Positions 1 to 14,161 of a stretch of DNA of 64,000 nt are shown here, piece after piece. The stretch's first letter is position 1, and the number at the start of each line of letters is the position of its first letter. The notes under the pieces were generated by a model. That model was not told the DNA's origin. It was given only the letters and a program-made list of their open reading frames with translations, and searched no databases. The position numbers and the translations under genes are program-made. The DNA comes from Auanema rhodensis (taxonomy: Eukaryota > Animalia > Nematoda), in contig OZ059898.1 of NCBI GenBank assembly GCA_964057225.1, positions 11,160,001 to 11,224,000 on the forward strand, read 5' to 3'.

Positions 1-1283
1 GTGATGAAAATCGAACACTTATTCGAAACCTTCATTTGTTTTCAAACAAACTACAAAAATTTAGAAAAATAACATTTTTAGTTCTAACCTTTTACAGAAT
101 TGAGAACAGTTAAACAAAAATAAAAAATCATGTTTAAAAGTTTTTTTTGGACACTATATTGCCCGTTTAAAACGTCCAGGAGATGCTCCAGAAGAAGCTT
201 TACTCTTTGATCCAGTTCCAAATTTTGTTACAAAAATGTGTCCAAAACTTTATAATTATCTAAAAATAGTAAACCTTCAGTTTTCAATATATAAACAGAC
301 ATGGTGTTTTTGTATTTTTTTGTAGTTTGAACAGCATTTCTGAATTCTTTTAAAGAACACAGTATACAACATATCAACATTTAATTTATTCCCTATCGAG
401 GACATGTATAAAAAGTTCACTTTGTCCTGGTTTTGGAGGTAGACAAATGAGAATACAGGATGGGTTACATTTTTACTATTAAATGAGATTCTATAAAATG
501 TTTCATAAACATATGAGTATTATCGGGTTAATTAATAAAACACAAAACCCCTCCAAGGATCCATATGCTATAAATAAAATATTTTATATTATAAGAATTT
601 CATAATAATCTTTTATCTTGAATCATTTTGCACTATAGGGTACGGATGATGATAACGTTGATTCAACAATCGAAAATCGCTTCCCCTAAAGGAAGATAAT
701 CAAAACCTTTCTTTCAATTCCTTAAACAACAGTTTCCGCCAGTTTACCATTCCTGTTTATATCTATAGGTATGTGATATGCTATATATACATCTCGCATA
801 CCCGAACGACTTCATTAACTTGATTGCTTAAAAAAGCAATTTTCAATACGTGTCTTTGTTCTCAAAAGTGTCAAGTTTTGATGAACGATATTGAAATGTT
901 AAATGATTGGTGACGATATCAAAGATATATTGAGGAGAGAGCTATGCAAAATAATCGAAAGTTCTGATTGTTTAAATGTACGGGTGGGATTATGCTAACC
1001 AGGAACTAGCCAAACACCCAGCTGTTTTAAGGAAATATGATTCCTTAATAAATACGGTTCATATGATAGTGTGATCAGTTCAGTTTCTTCGTAGTCTAAT
1101 TGAATATTATGACGTTTTCGTCGTTCTCACATCCATTCTCTCAATCAAGCATTACAACACTTCGAATCAAAATCTCTTCCGATTCGCGGTATCGCTCAGC
1201 TAATTCTTCGAACCGAACAAAGAATAACTTTTTTCCATTGATATTCACACTTTGATCATTGCGAATCTTTGTTACCTTAACTT

Positions 1284-2366
1284 TTCCAGAAGAAAATGTT
1301 GCGTTGGATTGTAGGATTATTATTGCTTCAAATTTCATTGCAATGTATGAAAACAAATCCGGGAGAGACAAGTAAGTATAAATTTTGATAAATATTACAA
1401 ATTTTCTAATAATGTTTTAAATTTCTTGAATTCTTTTCAGCTACTGTCATGCCTGTAACTACACCTATTCCAGGTTTGATTAACTTATAATCAAAACATT
1501 TATAATTTGTTTTATAGCCACTACACCAGTTATCCCAGGTACTGACAATTTGTTTTAAACTTTCTAAGTATTTACAAACTTGTATTCTTTTTTCTCATTT
1601 CAACTCAAAAAATAGGAAGACCTATATTGAAATTTTAGTGAAAAAAATTAAAAAAGAAGAATAATTGACCCAACCTTATAAGCTTTGAATCTTTCTTACT
1701 ATTCAGATATTGCTTGATCATTCATCCTAACAACTTAACAACTTAACAACTAAAACTTAGTTATCACATCATCTTCATTCATATGCTTTATTACTTTTAA
1801 ACGAATATTCATTATGAGATATATGTATAAGATATTTCTAAACTTCCAAATCTAAATCTGTCCAATCTTTTAATCAAAAAATTAGAAATTTCTCTTTTTA
1901 CAATTGCAATTGAAATGACAAATCGAGGTTAATGCCCTATACTTACATATATCAACAGCTTGAGTTGTAAATTGTCTATCCAAAGAGAAAAAGAGTTTTT
2001 GGGTTTTTCTTCTTTCTCTTACAATCCTCCTTTCTGTTTTTTCTGTATCCATTTATTTTATAATTAAACTATAACAATAATTAAAAATCAAAGCACAATA
2101 TCTTGAAATTCTAGAATACTCCCTAAGAGAATGTTTGGGGAAAATGTCTAAAAAGGGTAAATAATCCTGTTAGAAAGCCATTTCATCCTAGACCAAAAAT
2201 CATAACATCCACATACAGTTTCAGAAGTTTGAAATAAAGACATTCAAATCAGAATTACTAGTTTAATATTGAAATTTGGAAATAATTTGAATATTTATTA
2301 ATAACTTATTATAACTTAAAACCAATTTTACTTTTAACAAACTCATTTTTCTATATTTCCGTACTA
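1284..2366 (+). repeat. Direct duplication copy 1 (partner 6768-7850, offset 5484)
   Basis: About 1080 nt with only two substitutions seen by eye. Covers the acceptor before the ATG, exons 1-3 and most of the long third intron. Confidence 0.95.
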
Positions 2367-5300
2367 TTTACATCATTACATTGCTCAACAATATGAATTT
2401 TTTTCTAATTACAACCATCATCAGCTGAACTCCACTACTGTGTTTACTACAACAGTATACTCACTTATGTTCTTTCTTTTCAAATTTGTCCAACTTGCTT
2501 TTCAGTTACAACACCAGCAGTTACTACCGCTGTGCCAGTGGATACAACAACGGAGATCATAAGTAAGAACTTCCTACTTCTGTTAACCAACTTCATGCTT
2601 TCTATCGCTTTTCTATCCCTTCTGCAACACCTGAGCTTTTATTGGTTCAATTCCCAAAGAGTTATTGAAGTTCTTCCTCTGAGTACCTGAACTAACCTCC
2701 AAAAAATACAGAAGAGACCGATCGCATGCTTGTAACCCAACTGTCCAACTTGCTTTTCAGTTACAACACCAGAAGTTACTACTGCTATACCAGTGGATAC
2801 AACAACGGAGATCATAAGTAAGAACTTCCTACTTCTGTTAACCAACTTCATGCTTTCTATCGCTTTCCACTTGCTTCTGCAAAATCTGAGCTTTTACTGG
2901 TTCAATTCCCAAAGAGTTATTGAAGTTCTTCCTCTGAGTACCTGAACTAACCTCCAAAAAATACAGAAGAGATCGATCGCATGCTTGTAACCCAACTGTC
3001 CAACTTGCTTTTCAGTTACAACACCAGAAGTTACTACTGCTATACCAGTGGATACAACAACGGAGATCATAAGTAAGAACTTCCTACTTCTGTTAACCAA
3101 CTTCATGCTTTCTATCGCTTTCCACTTGCTTCTGCAACTTCTGAGCTTTTATTGGTTCAATTCCCAAAGAGTTATTGAAGTTCTTCCTCTGAGTACCTGA
3201 ACTAACCTCCAAAAAATACAGAAGAGATCGATCGCATGCTTGTAACCCAACTGTCCAACTTGCTTTTCAGTTACAACACCTGAAGTTAGTACTGCTATAC
3301 CAGTAGATACAACAACGGAGATCATAAGTAAGAACTTCCAACTTCTGTTAACCAACTTTATGCTTTCTATCGCTTTCCACTTGCTTCTGCAACTTCTGAG
3401 CCTTTATGCGTTAAGTTCCCGAAGAGTTATTAAAGTTCTTCTCTTAAAACCTGAAATAACATCTGAAAAATTATGAAAAGATTGATCATATCCTTCTAAC
3501 CTAACTTTTCAACTTGCTTTTCAGTTACCACACCTCAGGTTACTACTGCTGTACCAGTGGATACAACAACGGAGATCATAAGTAAGAACTTCCTACTTCT
3601 GTTAACCAACTTCATGCTTTCTATCGCTTTCCACTTGCTTCTGCAAAATCTGAGCTTTTACTGGTTCAATTTCTGACGAGTTATTGAAGTTCTTCCTCTG
3701 AACACCTGAACTAACTTTCGAAAAATACAGAAGAGATCGATCGCATGCTTCTAACCCAACTGTTCAACTTGCTTTTCAGTTACAACACCAGAAGTTACTA
3801 CTGCTGTACCAGTGGATACAACAACGGAGATCATAAGTAAGAACTTCCTACTTCTGTTAACCAACTTCATGCTTTCTATCGCTTTCCACTTGCTTCTGCA
3901 AAATCTGAGCTTTTACTGGTTCAATTTCTGACGAGTTATTGAAGTTCTTCCTCTGAACACCTGAACTAACCTCCAAAAAATACAGAAGAGATCGATCGCA
4001 TGCTTCTAACCCAACTGTTCAACTTGCTTTTCAGTTACAACACCAGAAGTTACTACTGCGGTACCAGTGGATACAACAACGGAGATGATAAGTACGAACT
4101 CCCATGTTCTGTTAACCAACTTTATGCTTTCTATCGCTTTCCTTTTGCTTTTGCAATATCTGAGTTTTTATTGGTTCAGTTCCGAAACAGTTTTTGAAGT
4201 TCTAGCTTTGAAACTTGAATAAACTTTCGAAAAATCGAGAAAAGATCAACCACATGCTTCTAACCTAACTTTTCAACATGCTTTTCAGTCACAACACCTG
4301 AAGTTACTACCGCTGTACCAGTGGATACAACAACGGAGATGATCAGTAAGAACTCCCATGTTCTGTTAACCAACTTCATGCTTTCTATCGCTTTCCTTTT
4401 GCTTTTGCAATATCTGAGTTTTTATTGGTTCAGTTCGGAAACAGTTTTTGAAGTTCTAGCTTTGAAACTTGAATGAACTTTCGAAAAATCGAGAAAAGAT
4501 CAACCACATGCTTCTAACCTAACTATTCAACTTGCTTTTCAGTTACAACACCTGAAGTTACTACTGCTGTACCAGTCGATACAACAACGGAGATGATAAG
4601 TACGAACTCCCATGTTCTGTTAACCAACTTTATGCTTTCTATCACTTTTCTCTTGCTTCTGCAACTTCTGAGCTTTTATTGGTTCAATTCCCAAAGAGTT
4701 ATTGAAGTTCTTCCTCTGAAAACCCTAAATAACATCAGAAAAATTATGAAAACGATCGAGCGCATGCTTCTAACCTAACTATCCAACTTGCTTTTCAGTT
4801 ACAACACCTGAAGTTACTACCGCTGTACCAGTGGATACAACAACGGAGATGATCAGTAAGAACTCCAACTTTCTGTTAACCAACTTCATGCTTTATATTG
4901 CTTTTATCTTGCTTCTGCACTGTTTATGTTGTTTTTCTCTTGGTTATCATAATTTAAACAATATTCGTCGAATATAACAATAAAAAACCGAATTGCATAT
5001 CGGGAAAAATAGAAAGAAAAGAAAAAGTTGCGTTATATCTTGTTTTCGATCGAGATTTATGCTTTTTCAATTTCAAAATATAAAATCAAGAAAAAAAAAG
5101 AAAAATTGAACTTCTTTTCATAATTATCCTTTATGATTTCAATCTATTAATTACATATTCTTTCAGTTACAACCACAGAAGAACCAGTAACTCCAGTACC
5201 CACAGGTATCATCTCAATATTTTCTTATTTTTCAAAGTTTTTTTTAAATTTCATTACATATTAAACATTAATTATTTTATTTTAAAATACTTAAATGTAT

Positions 5301-6012
5301 AATCAGCATAGTTAAATAAACTTTACATGGGAGATATCATGAAACAAAGAAGTTTTAATGATTGTCGTTAAGACTTCACTAATTCTCATGATAGATAAAG
5401 CGGTACGATCCGATAAATCTCTAAATTTCCAGAACTGCCTGGTTCTTAACAACCGGCTCTCTTCTGGAACTTAAAAAACTTTGAACACATTTTAATTTTA
5501 ATCATATTTTAACTGTTTTTATTAAAATATTTCTTTCTTTTTTAACATTCATGTCTACATTTATAATCTACCCTGTTGACAGGATGTGGCGGATGTTTGG
5601 CCGAGGATCTTATTAGATTAACTATTCCCGAAGAAACATTCATCAATGGAGACGTATACATAACGTACACTTTTTCTTATTTATAACAAAGTATTTAATT
5701 CCTTTAGTGATTTTGAAATAAAAAATGGATGTGCAACAGCTATGTTAACATGCACAGGCCCTGGAAATGGAAAAGCTTTCTTACAGGTTTGGTTTCAAAT
5801 ACTTGATTTGCATATATAGAAATGGTAATGGTTTTCAGTTCAACGATCAAACAGTTTCAACTCCTCAGTATGGAGCGCAAAGAATTGTTATAGATATTGA
5901 GTGTAACAAGGATGGAAAGTGGCAATACACAGGACCAGATAAAAGTGTACCTCCAATCATGGTTACAACAGTTATGGATAATTTTTCCTGTGTTTATGGA
6001 ATAATACCTTAA
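1296..6012 (+). CDS. Secreted mucin-stalk / C6-domain protein, paralogue A (17 exons, 357 aa)
   Basis: Hand-spliced exons 1296-1371 (MLRWIVGLLLLQISLQCMKTNPGET), 1441-1473, 1518-1538, ten 57-nt exons starting 2506, 2761, 3016, 3271, 3525, 3780, 4035, 4289, 4543, 4799 (ITTPEVTTAVPVDTTTE[I/M]I), 5167-5205, 5583-5664, 5708-5786, 5839-6012. All GT-AG, phases consistent, total 1074 nt. C-terminal CGGC..GC..TC..EC..W..SC matches the nematode C6 domain pattern. AATAAA at 6070-6075. Confidence 0.85.
2488..4918 (+). repeat. Tandem array of ten 254-256 bp units (57-nt exon + about 198-nt intron), array A
   Basis: ttttcag|TTACAACACC...GAGAT[C/G]AT[A/C]A|gta[a/c]ga recurs at spacings 255, 255, 255, 254, 255, 255, 254, 254, 256. 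Confidence 0.95.
4799..5596 (+). repeat. Direct duplication copy 1 (partner 10410-11207, offset 5611)
   Basis: Last repeat exon, two introns and the linker exon are near-identical between paralogues. Identity ends immediately after GGATGTGGCGGATGT (CGGC). Confidence 0.93.
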
Positions 6013-6767
6013 TATACGTTAATATTATGTATAAAATAATATTGTCAAATATATAAATATTTTTATTTTAATAAATAAATGTTTATAACAGAATTTTCAA
6101 CCAAGAGATATATGATAAACATTTAGCTTTCACATTGTTATGCATTTGCTCTCACACGTTATGATTAAGAAGGCGATGGGGATACATGTGATATTTCATC
6201 AACAGCAAAACCCTTACGAATAACAATGATGAAAGTGTTTCTTTCACTAATTTTTACAATTAATTCTTATATATGTATATTCATAGATAATAAGAGTACT
6301 AAATTGAAATATCCCATTACTGATATTTAAATCTTCAGTACTGATGTCATAATCAGGAATATAAAGGTGTGAGGCTGTTTCAATACATGATCTTTATATG
6401 ATCATGATGCTTCGAATCTATTCAAGTTTTGGAAGATCTGCAATCAAGAATAATGAATAAGATACAGTTTTGTAGTGTTCCTGCTTGAAATCACTCATAA
6501 AACAAAGATTGAAAAAGAATTGAATCTTTAATATTTGAAGGAACATTTTCAATGAGTAAGTATTCCATAGATGTGAAATAACTTATAACTGCTTTAACTC
6601 TGATTAGCAGTAATGAGAAGCGGTTCAAAAAAATGCAAAATGAAATACATGAACTAATATATTAATATATTCTTTCTCTGGGCGTGGCTTATTTCGATCA
6701 TGGGGTGTGGCTTGTCTTTTGACCACACCGAGATCTTGATCATTGTTGAATTTCGATAGCAGAATTG

Positions 6768-7850
6768 TTCCAGAAGAAAATGTTGCGTTGGATTGTAGGA
6801 TTATTATTGCTTCAAATTTCATTGCAATGTATGAAAACAAATCCGGGAGAGACAAGTAAGTATAAATTTTGATAAATATTACAAATTTTCTAATAATGTT
6901 TTAAATTTCTTGAATTCTTTTCAGCTACTGTCATGCCTGTAACTACACCTATTCCAGGTTTGATTAACTTATAATCAAAACATTTATAATTTGTTTTATA
7001 GCCACTACACCAGTTATCCCAGGTACTGACAATTTGTTTTAAACTTTCTAAGTATTTACAAACTTGTATTCTTTTTTCTCATTTCAACTCAAAAAATAGG
7101 AAGACCTATATTGAAATTTTAGTGAAAAAAATTAAAAAAGAAGAATAATTGACCCAACCTTATAAGCTTTGAATCTTTCTTACTATTCAGATATTGCTTG
7201 ATCATTCATCCTAACAACTTAACAACTTAACAACTAAAACTTAGTTATCACATCATCTTCATTCATATGCTTTATTACTTTTAAACGAATATTCATTATG
7301 AGATATATGTATAAGATATTTCTAAACTTCCAAATCTAAATCTGTCCAATCTTTTAATCAAAAAATTAGAAATTTCTCTTTTTACAATTGCAATTGAAAT
7401 GACAAATCGAGGTTAATGCCCTATACTTACATATATCAACAGCTTGAGTTGTAAATTGTCTATCCAAAGAGAAAAAGAGTTTTTGGGTTTTTCTTCTTTC
7501 TCTTACAATCCTCCTTTCTGTTTTTTCTGTATCCATTTATTTTATAATTAAACTATAACAATAATTAAAAATCAAAGCACAATATCTTGAAATTCTAGAA
7601 TACTCCCTAAGAGAATGTTTGGGGAAAATGTCTAAAAAGGGTAAATAATCCTGTTAGAAAGCCATTTCATCCTAGACCAAAAATCATAACATCCACATAC
7701 AGTTTCAGAAGTTTGAAATAAAGACATTCAAATCAGAATTAATAGTTTAATATTGAAATTTGGAAATAATTTGAATATTTATTAATAACTTATTATAACT
7801 TAAAACCAATTTTACTTTTAACAAACTCATTTTTCTACATTTCCGTACTA
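6768..7850 (+). repeat. Direct duplication copy 2 (partner 1284-2366)
   Basis: Direct comparison of the two segments. Confidence 0.95.
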
Positions 7851-10800
7851 AAACAACGACAGTTATAACAACAACCTTACCTTCAATAAGAAAAGAATCT
7901 GAATGTAAGTGAACTAATCACTGCAACCCTGACGACAACTGAAGTTAAACGTAAGCTTCCTGACCCATGCACGCCAATGAAAGCTTGAGGATCCCTCCAC
8001 ACATAACCATTTCATTTCTTTCTCTGAATACCTGAAATATTCTCAACCAAATCGAGAAAAGATGGATCACATGCTTCTAACCTTACGGTCCAATTTGCTT
8101 TTCAGTTACAACACCAGAAGTTACTACTGCTATACCAGTGGATACAACAACGGAGATGATCAGTAAGAACTTCCGCCTTCTGTTAACCAACTTCATGCTT
8201 TCTATCGCTTTCCACTTGTTTCTGCGATATCTGAGCTTTTATTGGTACAATTCACAAAGAGTTATCAAAGTTTTTACTTTGAAAACTTGAAAAAACTTTC
8301 GACATATAATGAAAACAATCGACCACATGCTTCTAGCCTTACGGTCCAATTTGCTTTTCAGTTACCACACCTCAGGTTACTACTGCTGTACCAGTGGATA
8401 CAACAACGGAGATGATCAGTAAGAACTTCCGCCTTCTGTTAACCAACTTCGTGCTTTCTATCGCTTTCCTCTTGCTTCTGCAACTTCTGAGCTTTAATGC
8501 GTTAGGTTCCCAAAGAGTTATTCAAGTTCTTCCTCTGAAAACCCTAAATAACCTCAGAAAAATTATGAAAACGATCGAGCGCATGCTTCTAACCCAACTG
8601 TCCAACTTGCTTTTCAGTTACAACACCAGAAGTTACTACTGCGGTACCAGTGGATACAACAACGGAGATGATAAGTACGAACTCCCATGTTCTGTTAACC
8701 AACTTTATGCTTTCTATCGCTTTCCTCTTGCTTCTGCAACTTCTGAGCTTTTATTGGTTCAATTCCCAAAGAGTTATTCAAGTTCTTCCTCTGAAAACCC
8801 TAAATAACCTCAGAAAAATTATGAAAACGATCGAGCGCATGCTTCTAACCCAACTGTCCAACTTGCTTTTCAGTTACAACACCTGAAGTTACTACTGCTG
8901 TACCAGTGGATACAACAACGGAGATGATAAGTACGAACTCCCATGTTCTGTTAACCAACTTTATGCTTTCTATCACTTTCCTCTTGCTTCTGCAACTTCT
9001 GAGCTTTTATTGGTTCAATTCCCAAAGAGTTATTGAAGTTCTTCCTCTGAAAACCCTAAATAACATCAGAAAAATTATGAAAACGATCGAGCGCATGCTT
9101 CTAACCTAACTATCCAACTTGCTTTTCAGTTACAACACCTGAAGTTACTACCGCTGTACCAGTGGATACAACAACGGAGATGATAAGTACGAACTCCCAT
9201 GTTCTGTTAACCAACTTTATGCTTTCTATCACTTTCCTCTTGCTTCTGCAACTTCTGAGCTTTTATTGGTTCAATTCCCAAAGAGTTATTCAAGTTCTTC
9301 CTCTGAAAACCCTAAATAACCTCAGAAAAATTATGAAAACGATTGAGCGCATGCTTCTAACCCAACTGTCCAACTTGCTTTTCAGTTACAACACCTGAAG
9401 TTACTACTGCTGTACCAGTGGATACAACAACGGAGATGATAAGTACGAACTCCCATGTTCTGTTAACCAACTTTATGCTTTCTATCACTTTCCTCTTGCT
9501 TCTGCAACTTCTGAGCTTTTATTGGTTCAATTCCCAAAGAGTTATTCAAGTTCTTCCTCTGAAAACCCTAAATAACCTCAGAAAAATTATGAAAACGATC
9601 GAGTGCATGCTTTTAACCCAACTGTCCAACTTGCTTTTCAGTTACAACACCTGAAGTTACTACTGCTGTACCAGTGGATACAACAACGGAGATGATAAGT
9701 AAGAACTTCCAACTTCTGTTAACCAACTTCATGCTTTCTATCGCTTTCCTCTTGATTCTGCAACTTCTGAACTTCTATGCGTTAAGTTCCCAAAGAGTTA
9801 TTCAAGTTCTTCCTCTGAAAACCCTAAATAACCTCAGAAAAATTATGAAAACGATCAAGCGCATGCTTCTAACCCAACTGTCCAACTTGCTTTTCAGTTA
9901 CAACACCAGAAGTTACTACTGCGGTACCAGTCGATACAACAACGGAGATGATAAGTACGAACTCCCATGTTCTGTTAACCAACTTTATGCTTTCTATCGC
10001 TTTCATCTCGTTTCTGCAACTTCTGAGCTTCTATGCGTTAAGTTCCCAAAGAGTTATTCAAGTTCTTCCTCTGAAAACCCTAAATAACCTCAGAAAAATT
10101 ATGAAAACGATCAAGCGCATGCTTCTAACCCAACTGTCCAACTTGCTTTTCAGTTACAACACCTGAAGTTACTACTGCTGTACCAGTGGATACAACAACG
10201 GAGATGATAAGTACGAACTCCCATGTTCTGTTAACCAACTTTATGCTTTCTATCGCTTTCATCTCGTTTCTGCAACTTCTGAGCTTTTATTGGTTCAATT
10301 CCCAAAGAGTTATTCAAGTTCTTCCTCTGAAAACCCTAAATAACCTCAGAAAAATTATGAAAACGATTGACCACATGCTTCTAACCTAACTATCCAACTT
10401 GCTTTTCAGTTACAACACCTGAAGTTACTACTGCTGTACCAGTGGATACAACAACGGAGATGATCAGTAAGAACTCCAACTTTCTGTTAACCAACTTCAT
10501 GCTTTATATTGCTTTCATCTTGCTTCTGCACTGTTTATGTTGTTTTTCTCTTGGTTATCATAATTTAAACAATATTCGTCGAATATAACAATAAAAAACC
10601 GAATTGCATATCGGGAAAAATAGAAAGAAAAGAAAAAGTTGCGTTATATCTTGTTTTCGATCGAGATTTATGCTTTTTCAATTTCAAAATATAAAATCAA
10701 GAAAAAAAAAGAAAAATTGAACTTCTTTTCATAATTATCCTTCATGATTTCAATCTATTAATTACATATTCTTTCAGTTACAACCACAGAAGAACCAGTA

Positions 10801-11621
10801 ACTCCAGTACCCACAGGTATCATCTCAATATTTTCTTATTTTTCAAAGTTTTTTTTAAATTTCATTACATATTAAACATTAATTATTTTATTTTAAAATA
10901 CTTAAATGTATAATCAGCATAGTTAAATAAACTTTACATGGGAGATATCATGAAACAAAGAAGTTTTAATGATTGTCGTTAAGACTTCACTAATTCTCAT
11001 GATAGATAAAGCGGTACGATCCGATAAATCTCTAAATTTCCAGAACTGCCTGGTTCTTAACAACCGGCTCTCTTCTGGAACTTAAAAAACTTTGAACACA
11101 TTTTAATTTTAATCATATTTTAACTGTTTTTATTAAAATATTTCTTTCTTTTTTAACATTCATGTCTAAATTTATAATCTACCCTGTTGACAGGATGTGG
11201 CGGATGTACTCTCGATCAACTTCCCCGTTTCGTCATTCCTGAAGATCCTACAACTGGATTTGTAGAAGGAGAGGCATCATTATCGTTTAGTTTACATTTT
11301 TTATCAAAAATCACTCATTCTGTTACAGAGATATTAAAATAGTAAATGGTTGTGCTGTAACAGTTCTCACATGCACAGGCCCTGGAAACGGAGTAGCCTT
11401 CATAACGGTAAGTTTTCATTGTAAATCGTACATACAGTCTTACTTGTTTTCAGTTCAATAGTGAAACTGTATCTAGTCCGGATGCTGATTTAGTTGTTAG
11501 TGTTGAGCTTAATTGTGACGAAAATAAGCAATGGACTTTAATATCCCCGGACCATGAAAATCCGGCAAATTCTGTTACAACAGTGTTGAATAATTATTCT
11601 TGTCAATTTGCATCATTATAA
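6780..11621 (+). CDS. Secreted mucin-stalk / C6-domain protein, paralogue B (17 exons, 358 aa)
   Basis: Exons 6780-6855, 6925-6957, 7002-7022, ten 57-nt exons from 8106 to 10410 at exact 256-bp steps, 10778-10816, 11194-11284, 11329-11407, 11454-11621; 1077 nt in frame. Head CGGCTLDQLPRFVIPEDP...NGCAVTVLTCTGPGNG...ELNCDENKQW...NYSCQFASL. AATAAA at 11641-11646. Confidence 0.85.
8050..10530 (+). repeat. Tandem array of ten 256-bp exon+intron units, array B
   Basis: Exon starts 8106, 8362, 8618, 8874, 9130, 9386, 9642, 9898, 10154, 10410. Confidence 0.95.
10410..11207 (+). repeat. Direct duplication copy 2 (partner 4799-5596)
   Basis: Direct comparison of the two segments. Confidence 0.93.
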
Positions 11622-13668
11622 TATTATATGTATTTTTCTTAATAAAGATTTTAATTTATGCCGGGAACTTTATAATAAGTTTTTATTTCCCAGTGCAAAT
11701 GCAGAGCATGTCAAACCGATTTGTTCAATACCTTCAAACCGTAAACAAGACTTACTTTATGGTTAAGTGTTGATAATAAATTGAACAAGAAGTCAAGAAA
11801 TCAAATAATAAAATTTTAATAAAAAAATTGAAATAATGAAGAAGATACAGGGCCAACACATATGAATATGACAGCAGCTTGATCTCTCTGAATTTTTTTC
11901 CACTTACTTTCTCATAGTGGTTATCATATTTCTCTTTTTTGCTAAATAAGATACTTATACCGATGATCCATGCAGCACAGATTTCTCAAAACTTTGATTA
12001 ATACTTAACAAACTTATTTAGAAAATGTTTATAATATGTTATTTTAGTTACAAAAATGATATGACATATAAAACGTTGTAAGAGTTGTAGATACTAACAA
12101 ATATAGCACCAGTATCACGTGTTATTGAAATCCTGAAGCCTAAAAGTTGAAAAGTTAGGTTACAATCAGATGACAGATACAATTGAGCCACAATGCCTAG
12201 TTAGCAATTTCTTTTAATAAATCGATTTAATCAGTTTTTAGAAAATTCTGCTTTGCTTTATGATAATTATTTTTATTCATGAATTATGTTGTTTCTCAGA
12301 AAATATAGCATACAGATAGAGAAGACAAAAGAAATGAAAGACTCCACACTACTTGCTCCTCAAACTTAGCTCTGACAAGACAATTGATGGCTATCTCCAG
12401 TGTTCTTGAAATCTTTAGCAACTCTAGGATGTATTTCTGTCTGTCTGCCTCATTTTCTCAACTTTCTGTCTTATTTCTGCTCGTTTGGCTAATTAATGAC
12501 CTCTGACAATCAAAGTCTCAGCTTTATCACCATCTCCTAGTACTCCTTGTGCTGATTGCTTCTTGTCTTGCCTCTTTCCTTCATTCAATCTCATCTTTAT
12601 CGTATTTCTATCTACCTCTTTTTATTCTTATTCTTTTTATTTTTATTTTTCAATTTTTGAATTATCTCCATCATTCTCCCCTCTCCTTCTTTCTTACACA
12701 TGTTTTATCAATTTTTTCTCATATCATAAATCGTATCAGATGACTTAAATTTAAATTTTCTGGCTATACATACCTCAATCATCTATCTTCATACTATCAA
12801 TTGAATCTGGTAAAGAAGACCTTCACATAGGCTCCGCCCCATTTTCCAGCTATCATCTCATTGAGAGTCATCGATGTCATCTTCTGGTAATTCCTGTGCG
12901 AATCTTACCTGGTTTTCAATCATCTTTTTTCTTCATCTTTTTTTTAGCTTTTTGTTCATTGTATTGATTTTCATTTGTGCAACTTTTCTTCAACATTTTT
13001 GATTCAAATAGTTTTCTTAGTAATGCTGATATTCAAATGCTTAAACTACCGTAGGTGTTACAGAATTCTAAATTATAAACGAATTAACATAATAAGAAGT
13101 TAAGAGTATAACAAGAAAATTACAAATTACGATACACACAGACTTTGCTTATATTTCTACTGATATTCAATCCTTCGAGAGAAATTTCGAAACTCTTAGA
13201 TTTTTCAAACTTTTTTTTCAAAAATCTATCTTTTCAATTCTTCATTTTCTTTTTTTTTTCTCAAAAAATGAACAGAACTTTAAACCAGGAAACCTATACT
13301 AAGAATTATTGTAATTATCCCCTTTTAGTTGCTTATCTTTATATTTCTTTTCCAGCATTTTGCTAATACAAATTGTTAAAATCTACAAGCTGTTCAATCA
13401 ACAAATATAAGTTGTACTATGTGATAATGTTTCGGTATTTCAAGCTTTCTCTCTACGTGAACACTTAGTAAAAGGTTTCTGAATTTTATTTGTTTGAGCA
13501 ATTGCTAGTCTGTACTCTAGTTCCTGTTCTTCAGATTTTTCTTATAGCCGTTGGCAAGATATGATATCTTTTCATTTATTTGGTACATTGCCAAAATTGT
13601 TTTATTGAAATTTTTTGTCAGTTAGTCATGTGTTATATACATATACCTTTCTATTCCCTTTGTGTCAT

Positions 13669-14161
13669 TATATAAAAGTCCTTCTGAAAGGATAATAAAT
13701 AATGCTTTTATCTACAGCAACAGGCGCTGTTCATCTTGAGTTTAGTCGTTATTTCTTCAGCGTTTGCTTCTGCTGCCGTCCGTTGAGCTAGCCGTAGGTC
13801 CATCGGACTGCCCAATTGAAACGGACTAAGCTCACCGTCCCACGGCAGCGATCTTTCACGTCTCTCTTTTTTCTGTTTTTTTATTGTCTAGTGTAAGTAT
13901 TTTAATGATGCCAATCTACATTTCGTTTGTTTTCAGTATTATCCTTCCTCCTCACTTTATCATCTTATTCTGTTGCACAGTGATTTTCTGAATTGCAAAG
14001 TAGAATTGCAAAAGTATTGAAAAGCAATTTTCTTTTTTTTTCAATGAATTTCTTTACTTATTCATTATTTTGTATCTGTTCTCTCTTATTACTTTTTTGA
14101 ATTTGTTTGGAATTAAAATAAGCTTTGAAATTTAGTTCTGACCTCTACTTGAACTTCTACA
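13669..14161 (+). promoter_or_regulatory. Putative him-4 TATA box and spliced 5' UTR
   Basis: TATATAAAAG at 13669-13678; a canonical 44-nt GTAAGT...TTTTCAG intron at 13893-13936; TTTAG acceptor ending 14135, 26 nt before the ATG. Confidence 0.45.

Follow-up and report, generated by a model that had tools for sequence, protein, structure and literature searches.

Results

Two tandem genes of 17 exons each, A and B, lie on the + strand directly upstream of hemicentin on this nematode contig. Positions refer to the window, i.e. the whole 64,000-nt stretch of DNA that was analysed, and all features described below are on the + strand. The predicted model of gene A (1296-6012, 357 codons plus stop) comprises i) three leader exons (1296-1371, 1441-1473, 1518-1538), ii) ten 57-nt exons starting at 2506, 2761, 3016, 3271, 3525, 3780, 4035, 4289, 4543 and 4799, iii) a 39-nt linker exon (5167-5205) and iv) three head exons (5583-5664, 5708-5786, 5839-6012). 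Gene B is modelled at 6780-11621 (358 codons plus stop), with leader exons at 6780-6855, 6925-6957 and 7002-7022, ten 57-nt exons starting at 8106, 8362, 8618, 8874, 9130, 9386, 9642, 9898, 10154 and 10410, a linker exon at 10778-10816 and head exons at 11194-11284, 11329-11407 and 11454-11621. A further exon, specific to B, may lie at 7863-7904. These models were built from the sequence: the frame is open across all exons, donors are GT, acceptors are mostly TTTCAG and the phases are consistent. Both 17-exon frames are intact, intron positions and phases match between the genes, and a poly(A) signal AATAAA is found 58 nt past the stop codon in A (6070-6075) and 20 nt past it in B (11641-11646).

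Both genes are predicted to encode, in this order, a signal peptide, a Thr-rich mucin-like stretch and a divergent C6-type six-cysteine domain. The mucin-like stretch stems from the ten 57-nt phase-1 exons, and a 230-residue region contains 36% Thr and 12.6% Pro. Thr/Ser- and Pro-rich tandem repeats behind a signal peptide, the latter read from the sequence only, place both proteins in the mucin type (PTS), and they are probably secreted and heavily O-glycosylated. We use “stalk” and “head” merely as figures of speech, as nothing anchors the protein once the signal peptide is cleaved.

Head A (5583-6012) is a divergent C6-type domain spread over three exons, with introns in phases 2 and 0, and the C6-type domain of head B (11194-11621) has its introns at the same positions. 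The cysteine layout of the heads (C-x2-C / C-x6-C-x-G-P / C-x2-(D/E)-(G/N)-K-W / C) is that of the six Pfam-confirmed C6 domains in P0002, a 6xC6 protein of Pristionchus entomophagus. Likewise, it resembles the Pfam C6 family (PF01681) with its C-x2-C, C-x6-C-x-G-P, C-x2-(D/E)-(G/N)-K-(x)-W and final C, and with its secreted nematode context. C6 domains are also carried by FIG-1 of C. elegans (PMC8871372). Compared with Pfam C6, FIG-1 and P0002, however, the heads are very diverged, and detection is marginal, with no single exon reaching the cut-off. When the head peptides were scanned exon by exon against Pfam C6 (curated cut-off 27.9 bits), exon 3 of head A alone scored 19 bits (E=0.002, profile positions 59-89), which is below the cut-off, and the other five single-exon peptides gave no score. 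ShKT had no match among the six peptides in the Pfam scan at E up to 10. BLASTP of head A exon 3 against P0002 gave 3e-07. A local profile of the P0002 domains placed both exon 3 peptides in the region of the fifth cysteine and exon 2 of B in the region of the third and fourth cysteines, whereas exon 2 of A aligned to another part of the profile, all with low scores.

A HMMER profile of both exon 3 peptides yielded four matches at E<1e-3 among 1.84 billion representatives, of which a Pristionchus C6 protein is the single genuine one, at a marginal E of 6e-4. The other three (a bacterial Ig-repeat protein, a protein with a Pfam match to the phage Gp49 family and an unannotated repeat protein) were discarded. 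A word search of protein collections with head A exon 3 found nothing and the ESM Atlas gave no usable match for it; neither the protein word search nor HMMER against the 1.84 billion representatives found an orthologue of the heads.

Along two segments, A and B are nearly base-identical and mostly intronic, in agreement with the initial annotation. Block 1 (1284-2366 in A, 6768-7850 in B) is identical at 1081/1083 positions, the only mismatches being at 2258 and 2354, and spans a TTCCAG acceptor, which is probably a trans-splice site, the 5'UTR, the signal-peptide exon, two small Thr/Pro exons and ~86% of a 967-nt intron. The second segment, 4799-5596 against 10410-11207, agrees at 794/798 positions (mismatches at 4821, 4905, 5132 and 5558), and identity reaches back to 4763 without a further mismatch, giving 830/834 for block 2 (4763-5596 in A, 10374-11207 in B). 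According to the exon table, the intron share is ~88% in block 1, ~86% in block 2 and ~87% overall. In A, sequence of the B type extends even further, over 4528-5596, and includes units A9-A10 of the array described below, a 311-nt intron, the 39-nt linker exon, a 377-nt intron and 14 nt at the start of the head exon (Cys-Gly-Gly-Cys); up to 4527, every B unit mismatches.

The limits of identity are sharp and lie where they had been placed before. Identity sets in exactly at the TTCCAG acceptor (1284/6768), and it ends just after the CGGC codons, 14 nt into the first head exon, following GATGTGGCGGATGT, which comprises the two final bases of the Gly codon at the boundary and the Cys-Gly-Gly-Cys codons. 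Within the blocks, neutral sequence differs by only ~0.3% between A and B. The identical runs of 974 and 425 columns compare with a longest run of 141 in 20,000 permutations of the discordant sites, which excludes chance; identical tracts beyond the expectation from discordant sites are a hallmark of interlocus gene conversion.

The blocks occur only twice in the 181-Mb assembly, which rules out a transposon or dispersed repeat as their source. The initial annotation also proposed to look for further heads attached to the same leader. Genome searches with leader, unit, linker and head sequences found no third copy of any of them in the 181 Mb, so there is no outside donor for the blocks and a third donor gene is ruled out. 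An Rfam scan over window positions 1-14000 had no match, and the conserved introns are thus without a known RNA.

Near-identical blocks of ~1 kb that lie 5.5 kb apart beside 2.5-kb tandem arrays are a hard region for any assembly, and reads of one paralogue correcting the other, or a mis-resolved repeat, might in principle have produced them. We regard such an artefact as very improbable. The assembly is highly contiguous (112 contigs), the blocks retain six differences, the arrays are unlike in unit length and type, and heads and flanks are clearly those of separate loci. Besides, polishing could lift an identity of ~97% to 99.7%, whereas it is unable to make sequence as unalignable as the flanks identical. 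The six block substitutions together with the differing arrays and heads indicate that A and B, as assembled, are probably two real loci, and polishing cross-talk could have raised the identity of the blocks somewhat.

Outside the blocks, little similarity is left. Over 500 nt upstream and 300 nt downstream, the identity of A and B is at the level of shuffled sequence, in line with the earlier view that the promoters differ, and a sensitive blastn search for residual flank homology gave a signal no different from that of an unrelated control pair. The head introns are 59-60% identical (shuffled ~50%) and the head exons 51-73%. At the protein level, the heads of 110 and 111 aa share 48 of 107 aligned pairs (45%), close to the ~46 of 111 counted by hand before, and they have kept all six cysteines, the TCTGPGNG motif and both intron positions. 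The pairwise estimates are dS ~0.87, which is near saturation, dN ~0.52 and dN/dS ~0.6. An old duplication appears well supported by flanks and head introns that have almost no similarity left. The near-identical neutral tracts thus stand directly beside homologous sequence of old divergence, a second hallmark of interlocus gene conversion.

A recent duplication of the whole gene, followed by extremely fast divergence of the heads under positive selection, would fit the dN/dS, which is fairly high for a folded domain. Nevertheless, synonymous sites, head introns and both flanks have diverged as much as the replacement sites or more. Since positive selection cannot produce such divergence of neutral sequence, this explanation is refuted and we give it practically no chance. 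In the same context, the proposed diversifying selection on the heads is not borne out by a pairwise dN/dS of this size at near-saturated dS and by the conserved features; ordinary divergence under constraint accounts for the heads equally well.

Between the blocks, each gene carries a tandem array in which exon and intron are repeated together. Array A (2422-4919) consists of ten units of 254-256 bp, each with a 57-nt exon of phase 1-1 and an intron of ~198 nt, and array B (8022-10530) of ten 256-bp units of the same design. Each exon encodes one 19-aa repeat, for example ITTPEVTTA(I/V)PVDTTTE(I/M)I, from 18 whole codons and one codon split over the junction, and variation among the repeat exons is mostly silent (14 variable nucleotide but 4 variable amino acid positions). 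The ten-unit design of the stalk and its unhomogenised interiors add to the first description of this locus.

The array interiors are only 82-89% identical between A and B, as against 93-99% within unit types. The types A1-3/5/6 and A7-8 are 11-18% off all B units and occur neither in B nor elsewhere in the genome. Unit A9 (256 bp), on the other hand, deviates from B4 at 2/256 positions (99.2% identity), and in the unit tree it falls among the B units, with B4 as its sister (support 94/97). The arrays are also unlike at their 5' junctions, where unrelated sequence measures 55 nt in A and 171 nt in B. Of the earlier claim that leader and stalk had been homogenised as a whole, the leader and the 3' part stand, whereas the array interiors are gene-specific and show concerted evolution of their own. 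With such interiors, the unit comparison points to two homogenised blocks of ~1.07 kb and not one.

In principle, one large recent transfer, i.e. a single tract of ~4.3 kb or the replacement of 1284-5596 in one gene by a partial duplication, might have been followed by later divergence of the array interiors. The divergence of the two blocks is statistically similarly low (2/1083 and 4/834), and each gene has exactly ten repeat exons, both of which speak for this scenario. However, the distance of the A1-3/5/6 and A7-8 types from the B units, together with their absence elsewhere, is too much for the time that a divergence of 0.3% allows, and the differing 5' junctions speak against it as well. 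Accordingly, we judge a single transfer improbable.

Discussion

We consider it likely that an old tandem duplication was followed by recent interlocus gene conversion in two blocks, with gene-specific array turnover between them. The core of this reading, in which promoter and head are spared and which had already been put forward in the initial annotation, is upheld by the difference of ~0.3% in the blocks as opposed to the dS of ~0.87 in the heads and the introns and flanks near or at saturation. After the duplication, flanks and head introns would have lost their similarity. Recent non-reciprocal copying between A and B would then have made two stretches near-identical, one from the acceptor just ahead of the ATG into the long intron, the other beginning at the penultimate repeat unit, crossing the linker and ending at the CGGC codons (4528-5596 in A). 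For the second stretch, the unit comparison makes B the probable donor; the direction could also have been from A to B, with subsequent amplification of that unit type inside B. Between the stretches, each array would have undergone its own unequal exchange, leaving gene-specific unit types and a nearly constant 19-aa repeat.

The blocks would come to a halt where the similarity of A and B collapses, i.e. at the promoter/outron and at the head. Both borders lie no more than 15 nt from a functional border (the acceptor ahead of the ATG at one end, the beginning of the cysteine domain at the other), so that the pair could serve as a test case for models of “islands of divergence”, in which selection or lost homology fences off regions from conversion. 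Introns that are more similar than the folded domain had been taken as a reversal of normal paralogue divergence; instead, this is the pattern that conversion classically leaves when selection or a loss of homology works against it. The placement of the borders may reflect selection for distinct expression and distinct heads, or lost homology alone may have blocked the spread; the positions could also have arisen by chance in one or two events, with no part played by selection. A conversion templated by RNA or cDNA, an idea raised by the 5' border at an acceptor of the trans-splice type, is ruled out: intron makes up most of the tracts, the upstream sequence contains no spliced leader, and the match breaks off within an exon.

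The process itself is well known, and the pair is a clean example of it that leaves current understanding unchanged. In C. elegans, conversion tracts range from 12 to 2958 bp and can include introns, and long Caenorhabditis tracts have been interpreted as several events added together in regions where no divergent selection works against them (PMC3966223). Mosaics of tandem paralogues in Caenorhabditis, as summarised there, include the survey of Semple & Wolfe and the cases of fog-2/ftr-1, hsp-16, col-12/col-13 and zim/him-8 (PMC3966223). Like these, A and B are adjacent paralogues of the same orientation, a few kb apart, with sharp identical tracts in otherwise diverged genes. In contrast to them, the tracts in A and B, ~1.07 kb each, fall towards the upper limit of that size range, consist of ~87% intron and flank an internal exon+intron array with its own turnover. 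The new points of our analysis are the gene-specific interiors, the position of A9 among the B units and the uniqueness of the modules in the assembly.

A comparable stalk is described for the polymorphic mucins SmPoMuc of Schistosoma mansoni, in which a small mucin-repeat exon is tandemly repeated with its introns and the repeats undergo concerted evolution, both inside a gene and among genes, through conversion and unequal exchange, selection being invoked to keep some exons different (PMC2576457). A and B share with SmPoMuc the small exon+intron unit and its concerted evolution. Differences concern the units (~1 kb with 27-bp exons and microsatellite spacers in SmPoMuc, 255 bp with 57-nt exons in A/B), the number of genes (many versus two) and the 3' part, which is conserved and multi-exonic behind the 5' repeats of SmPoMuc and is the diverged part in A/B (PMC2576457). 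The likeness is one of layout only, and no sequence relationship is expected.

Among nematodes, the surface-coat mucins TES-120/MUC-1 to MUC-5 of Toxocara canis, as presented in PMC9477421 (Loukas et al. 2000 cited there), are likewise secreted proteins in which a signal peptide precedes a Ser/Thr-rich mucin stretch and one or more six-cysteine domains form the C-terminus. According to the same account, however, their cysteine domains are paired ShKT/SXC domains, as opposed to the single C6-type (PF01681-like) domain predicted here. By their predicted domains, A and B are not members of the TES-120/MUC family, and the architecture is analogous only.

Repeated conversion might also hold a shared leader, mucin scaffold and linker identical as far as the CGGC codons while selection keeps two promoters and two C6 recognition heads apart, which we consider unlikely. 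If true, such a modular pair would follow the plan of the polymorphic mucins of schistosomes, but with the variable part shifted to the 3' domain, in a nematode of the free-living type. The symmetric phase-1 units would then permit changes in stalk length by unequal exchange or exon skipping, and a role with microbes that bind to the worm surface or gut would be conceivable. Besides, the pair documents a nematode mucin-like gene with exon+intron repeat units in place of a single long exon, and contributes two very diverged candidates to the barely studied C6 domain family.

Gene models

The window (G000:C6:11160001-11224000) lies on a nematode rather than a human contig. Both genes of the tandem pair, A (1296-6012, + strand) and B (6780-11621, +), keep intact frames over 17 exons (357 and 358 codons, respectively), with GT donors, matching phases and TTTCAG as the commonest intron end. 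Exons 1-3 encode MLRW...SLQC, which by eye reads as a typical signal peptide, together with short Thr/Pro stretches. They are followed by ten 57-nt exons, each of phase 1-1 and encoding a 19-aa repeat from 18 complete codons and one that the junction splits, then by a 39-nt linker exon and three exons for the C-terminal six-cysteine head; AATAAA lies 58 nt (A) and 20 nt (B) past the stop codons. Judged by its composition (36% Thr, ~15% Val, 12.6% Pro), the 230-aa region between signal peptide and CGGC is mucin-like. Spliced models assembled from the window coordinates served for translation and for the A/B comparison; database and family searches were run on single exons.

Two near-identical blocks between old paralogues

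Aligned globally, 900-6300 and 6384-11900 pass from random-level identity to windows of 100%, then to 72-95% over the repeat arrays and 99-100% beyond them, before the identity collapses. At an offset of 5484, block 1 (1284-2366 in A, 6768-7850 in B) has mismatches only at 2258 and 2354 (0.18% divergence), and at an offset of 5611, block 2 (4763-5596, 10374-11207) only at 4821, 4905, 5132 and 5558 (0.48%). Mismatches resume upstream at 1283, immediately 5' of TTCCAG, and downstream at 5597, immediately 3' of GATGTGGCGGATGT. The identical runs of 974 and 425 columns exceed the longest permuted run of 141 in 20,000 permutations. The initial annotation had reported near-identical introns and stalk beside diverged heads; this observation is real and exact, and its coordinates and counts all proved correct.

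Outside the blocks, the flanks of A and B (500 nt on the 5' side, 300 nt on the 3' side) align no better than shuffled sequence, and a sensitive blastn of these flanks gave no signal over an unrelated control pair. The head introns are 59-60% identical, compared with ~50% for shuffled sequence. Set against the divergence within the blocks, these values make neutral sequence inside younger, by some two orders of magnitude, than that immediately outside. Purifying selection cannot account for 1 kb of identical intron, and fast evolution of the heads cannot account for diverged head introns and flanks. This leaves non-reciprocal copying between the two paralogues, both of them old, as the explanation.

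Repeat arrays and extent of the tracts

Each repeat exon and its ~198-nt intron form a tandem unit of 254-256 bp, ten per gene (arrays 2422-4919 in A, 8022-10530 in B). Across units, exons are 93.7% alike versus 86.9% for introns, and the 14 variable exon positions alter the residue in only 4 codons, so that the repeat peptide must be under constraint. The repeat exons number exactly ten in each gene (2506-4855; 8106-10466) despite differing unit types and lengths (254-255 vs 256 bp), which may reflect chance or selection on stalk length.

When the units of both genes were compared pairwise and in a tree (paired support values), A1-3, A5 and A6 formed one clade (97/97), A7-8 a second (99/99), and B2-B9 fell in a third, poorly resolved group. 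The initial annotation had inferred homogenisation of leader and stalk; recent conversion of leader and linker stands, but it comprises two blocks, as the three unit groups, and with them the array interiors, are only 82-89% identical. A single 4.3-kb event followed by divergence of the arrays is unlikely, as A-type units are found nowhere else in the assembly. With this two-block correction, the proposed conversion mechanism holds. The exception among the A units is A9, which shares the 256-bp length of the B units and groups as sister to B4 (94/97), with 2 positions differing between them. Mismatches to all B units continue as far as 4527 and stop there, so that the B-type stretch in A covers 4528-5596, its 1069 nt being close to the length of block 1 (1083 nt). 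In the simpler reading, the 3' tract would have been copied from B to A; copying from A to B would additionally involve amplification of that unit within B.

A possible additional exon of 42 nt and phase 1-1, encoding ITTTLPSIRKESE, is present only in B, just beyond block 1 (7863-7904, +); it has a GTAAGT donor but a weak acceptor (aacgacAG), followed by degenerate repeat-exon remnants at ~7925-7950.

Borders and comparison with known systems

At the 5' end, the border is 6 nt upstream of the AG of an acceptor which itself lies 6 nt before the ATG, and the 3' border lies 14 nt inside the head. Conversion would spread until it reaches sequence that is held different by selection or too diverged to pair, and the border positions fit this idea, although on one genome it cannot be told apart from one or two events that ended there by chance. 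The idea itself is already in print, as Walsh's 'terminator mutations' and as long tracts in regions where conversion meets no opposition from divergent selection (PMC3966223), and as the 'islands of divergence' of PMC3728101.

In tandem paralogues of C. elegans, documented conversion tracts measure 12-2958 bp, and some of them take in introns (PMC3966223). In SmPoMuc, genomic repeats of exon plus intron undergo concerted evolution, with conversion described as intron-confined and exons kept different by selection; the authors extend this to SOWgp and to the genes of spider silk (PMC2576457). Toxocara MUC proteins resemble A and B in their layout of signal peptide, mucin and six-Cys domain, but their domain is ShKT. 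The A/B mosaic adds another case to an already known kind of system.

The heads

Heads A (5583-6012) and B (11194-11621) are identical at 48/107 aligned residues (45%), and have in common all six Cys, TCTGPGNG, the Trp after the fifth Cys and VTTV. Nei-Gojobori estimates are dS 0.87 and dN 0.52 (ratio ~0.6). Of the initial reading as conversion plus possible diversifying selection, the conversion mechanism is essentially right, but the heads give no evidence for diversifying selection. Within them, a 20-nt identical run, ACATGCACAGGCCCTGGAAA (~5746-5765 / ~11367-11386), encodes TCTGPGN; it is longer than expected by permutation (P=0.004) and points either to strong motif constraint or to micro-conversion.

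Scanned exon by exon, Pfam C6 (PF01681) matched in head exon 3 of A only, at 19 bits and thus below the 27.9-bit cut-off. When the exon 3 peptides of the two heads were combined into a profile and run against 1.84 billion representatives, the one genuine relative (E 6.4e-4) was a protein of Pristionchus entomophagus in which Pfam confirms six C6 domains. Since the cysteine spacing and motifs of these domains match those of heads A and B, we regard both heads as domains of C6 type that have diverged strongly. Such domains are also present in FIG-1, a secreted glial protein of C. elegans (PMC8871372). A six-frame C6 scan of the genome, a lower bound in which both heads went undetected, exceeded the cut-off only on another contig (G000:C1:7764761-7765075, +; 41.8 bits), in a match holding two stops, likely introns.

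Family size and neighbouring sequence

Throughout the assembly (181 Mb in 112 contigs), leader block, repeat unit, linker block and both head exon 3 peptides had no matches beyond A and B, and the further heads on the same leader that the initial annotation had considered were likewise not found. A 53-nt match of 85% identity to part of the linker intron (query 633-686 of 4856-5596), at G000:C5:16888860-16888912 (-) on a third contig, is probably due to chance or to a short low-complexity stretch common to both sites.

The spacer of 2.3 kb between gene B and a downstream hemicentin gene on the same strand is strongly pyrimidine-rich on the + strand at 12300-14000 (GC skew -0.19, AT skew -0.19), and this stretch (+) held no convincing reading frame. 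The hemicentin exons, of which a VWA-like one, read by eye, starts at ~14.3 kb, gave Pfam matches to the hemicentin GBD domain and to I-set domains.
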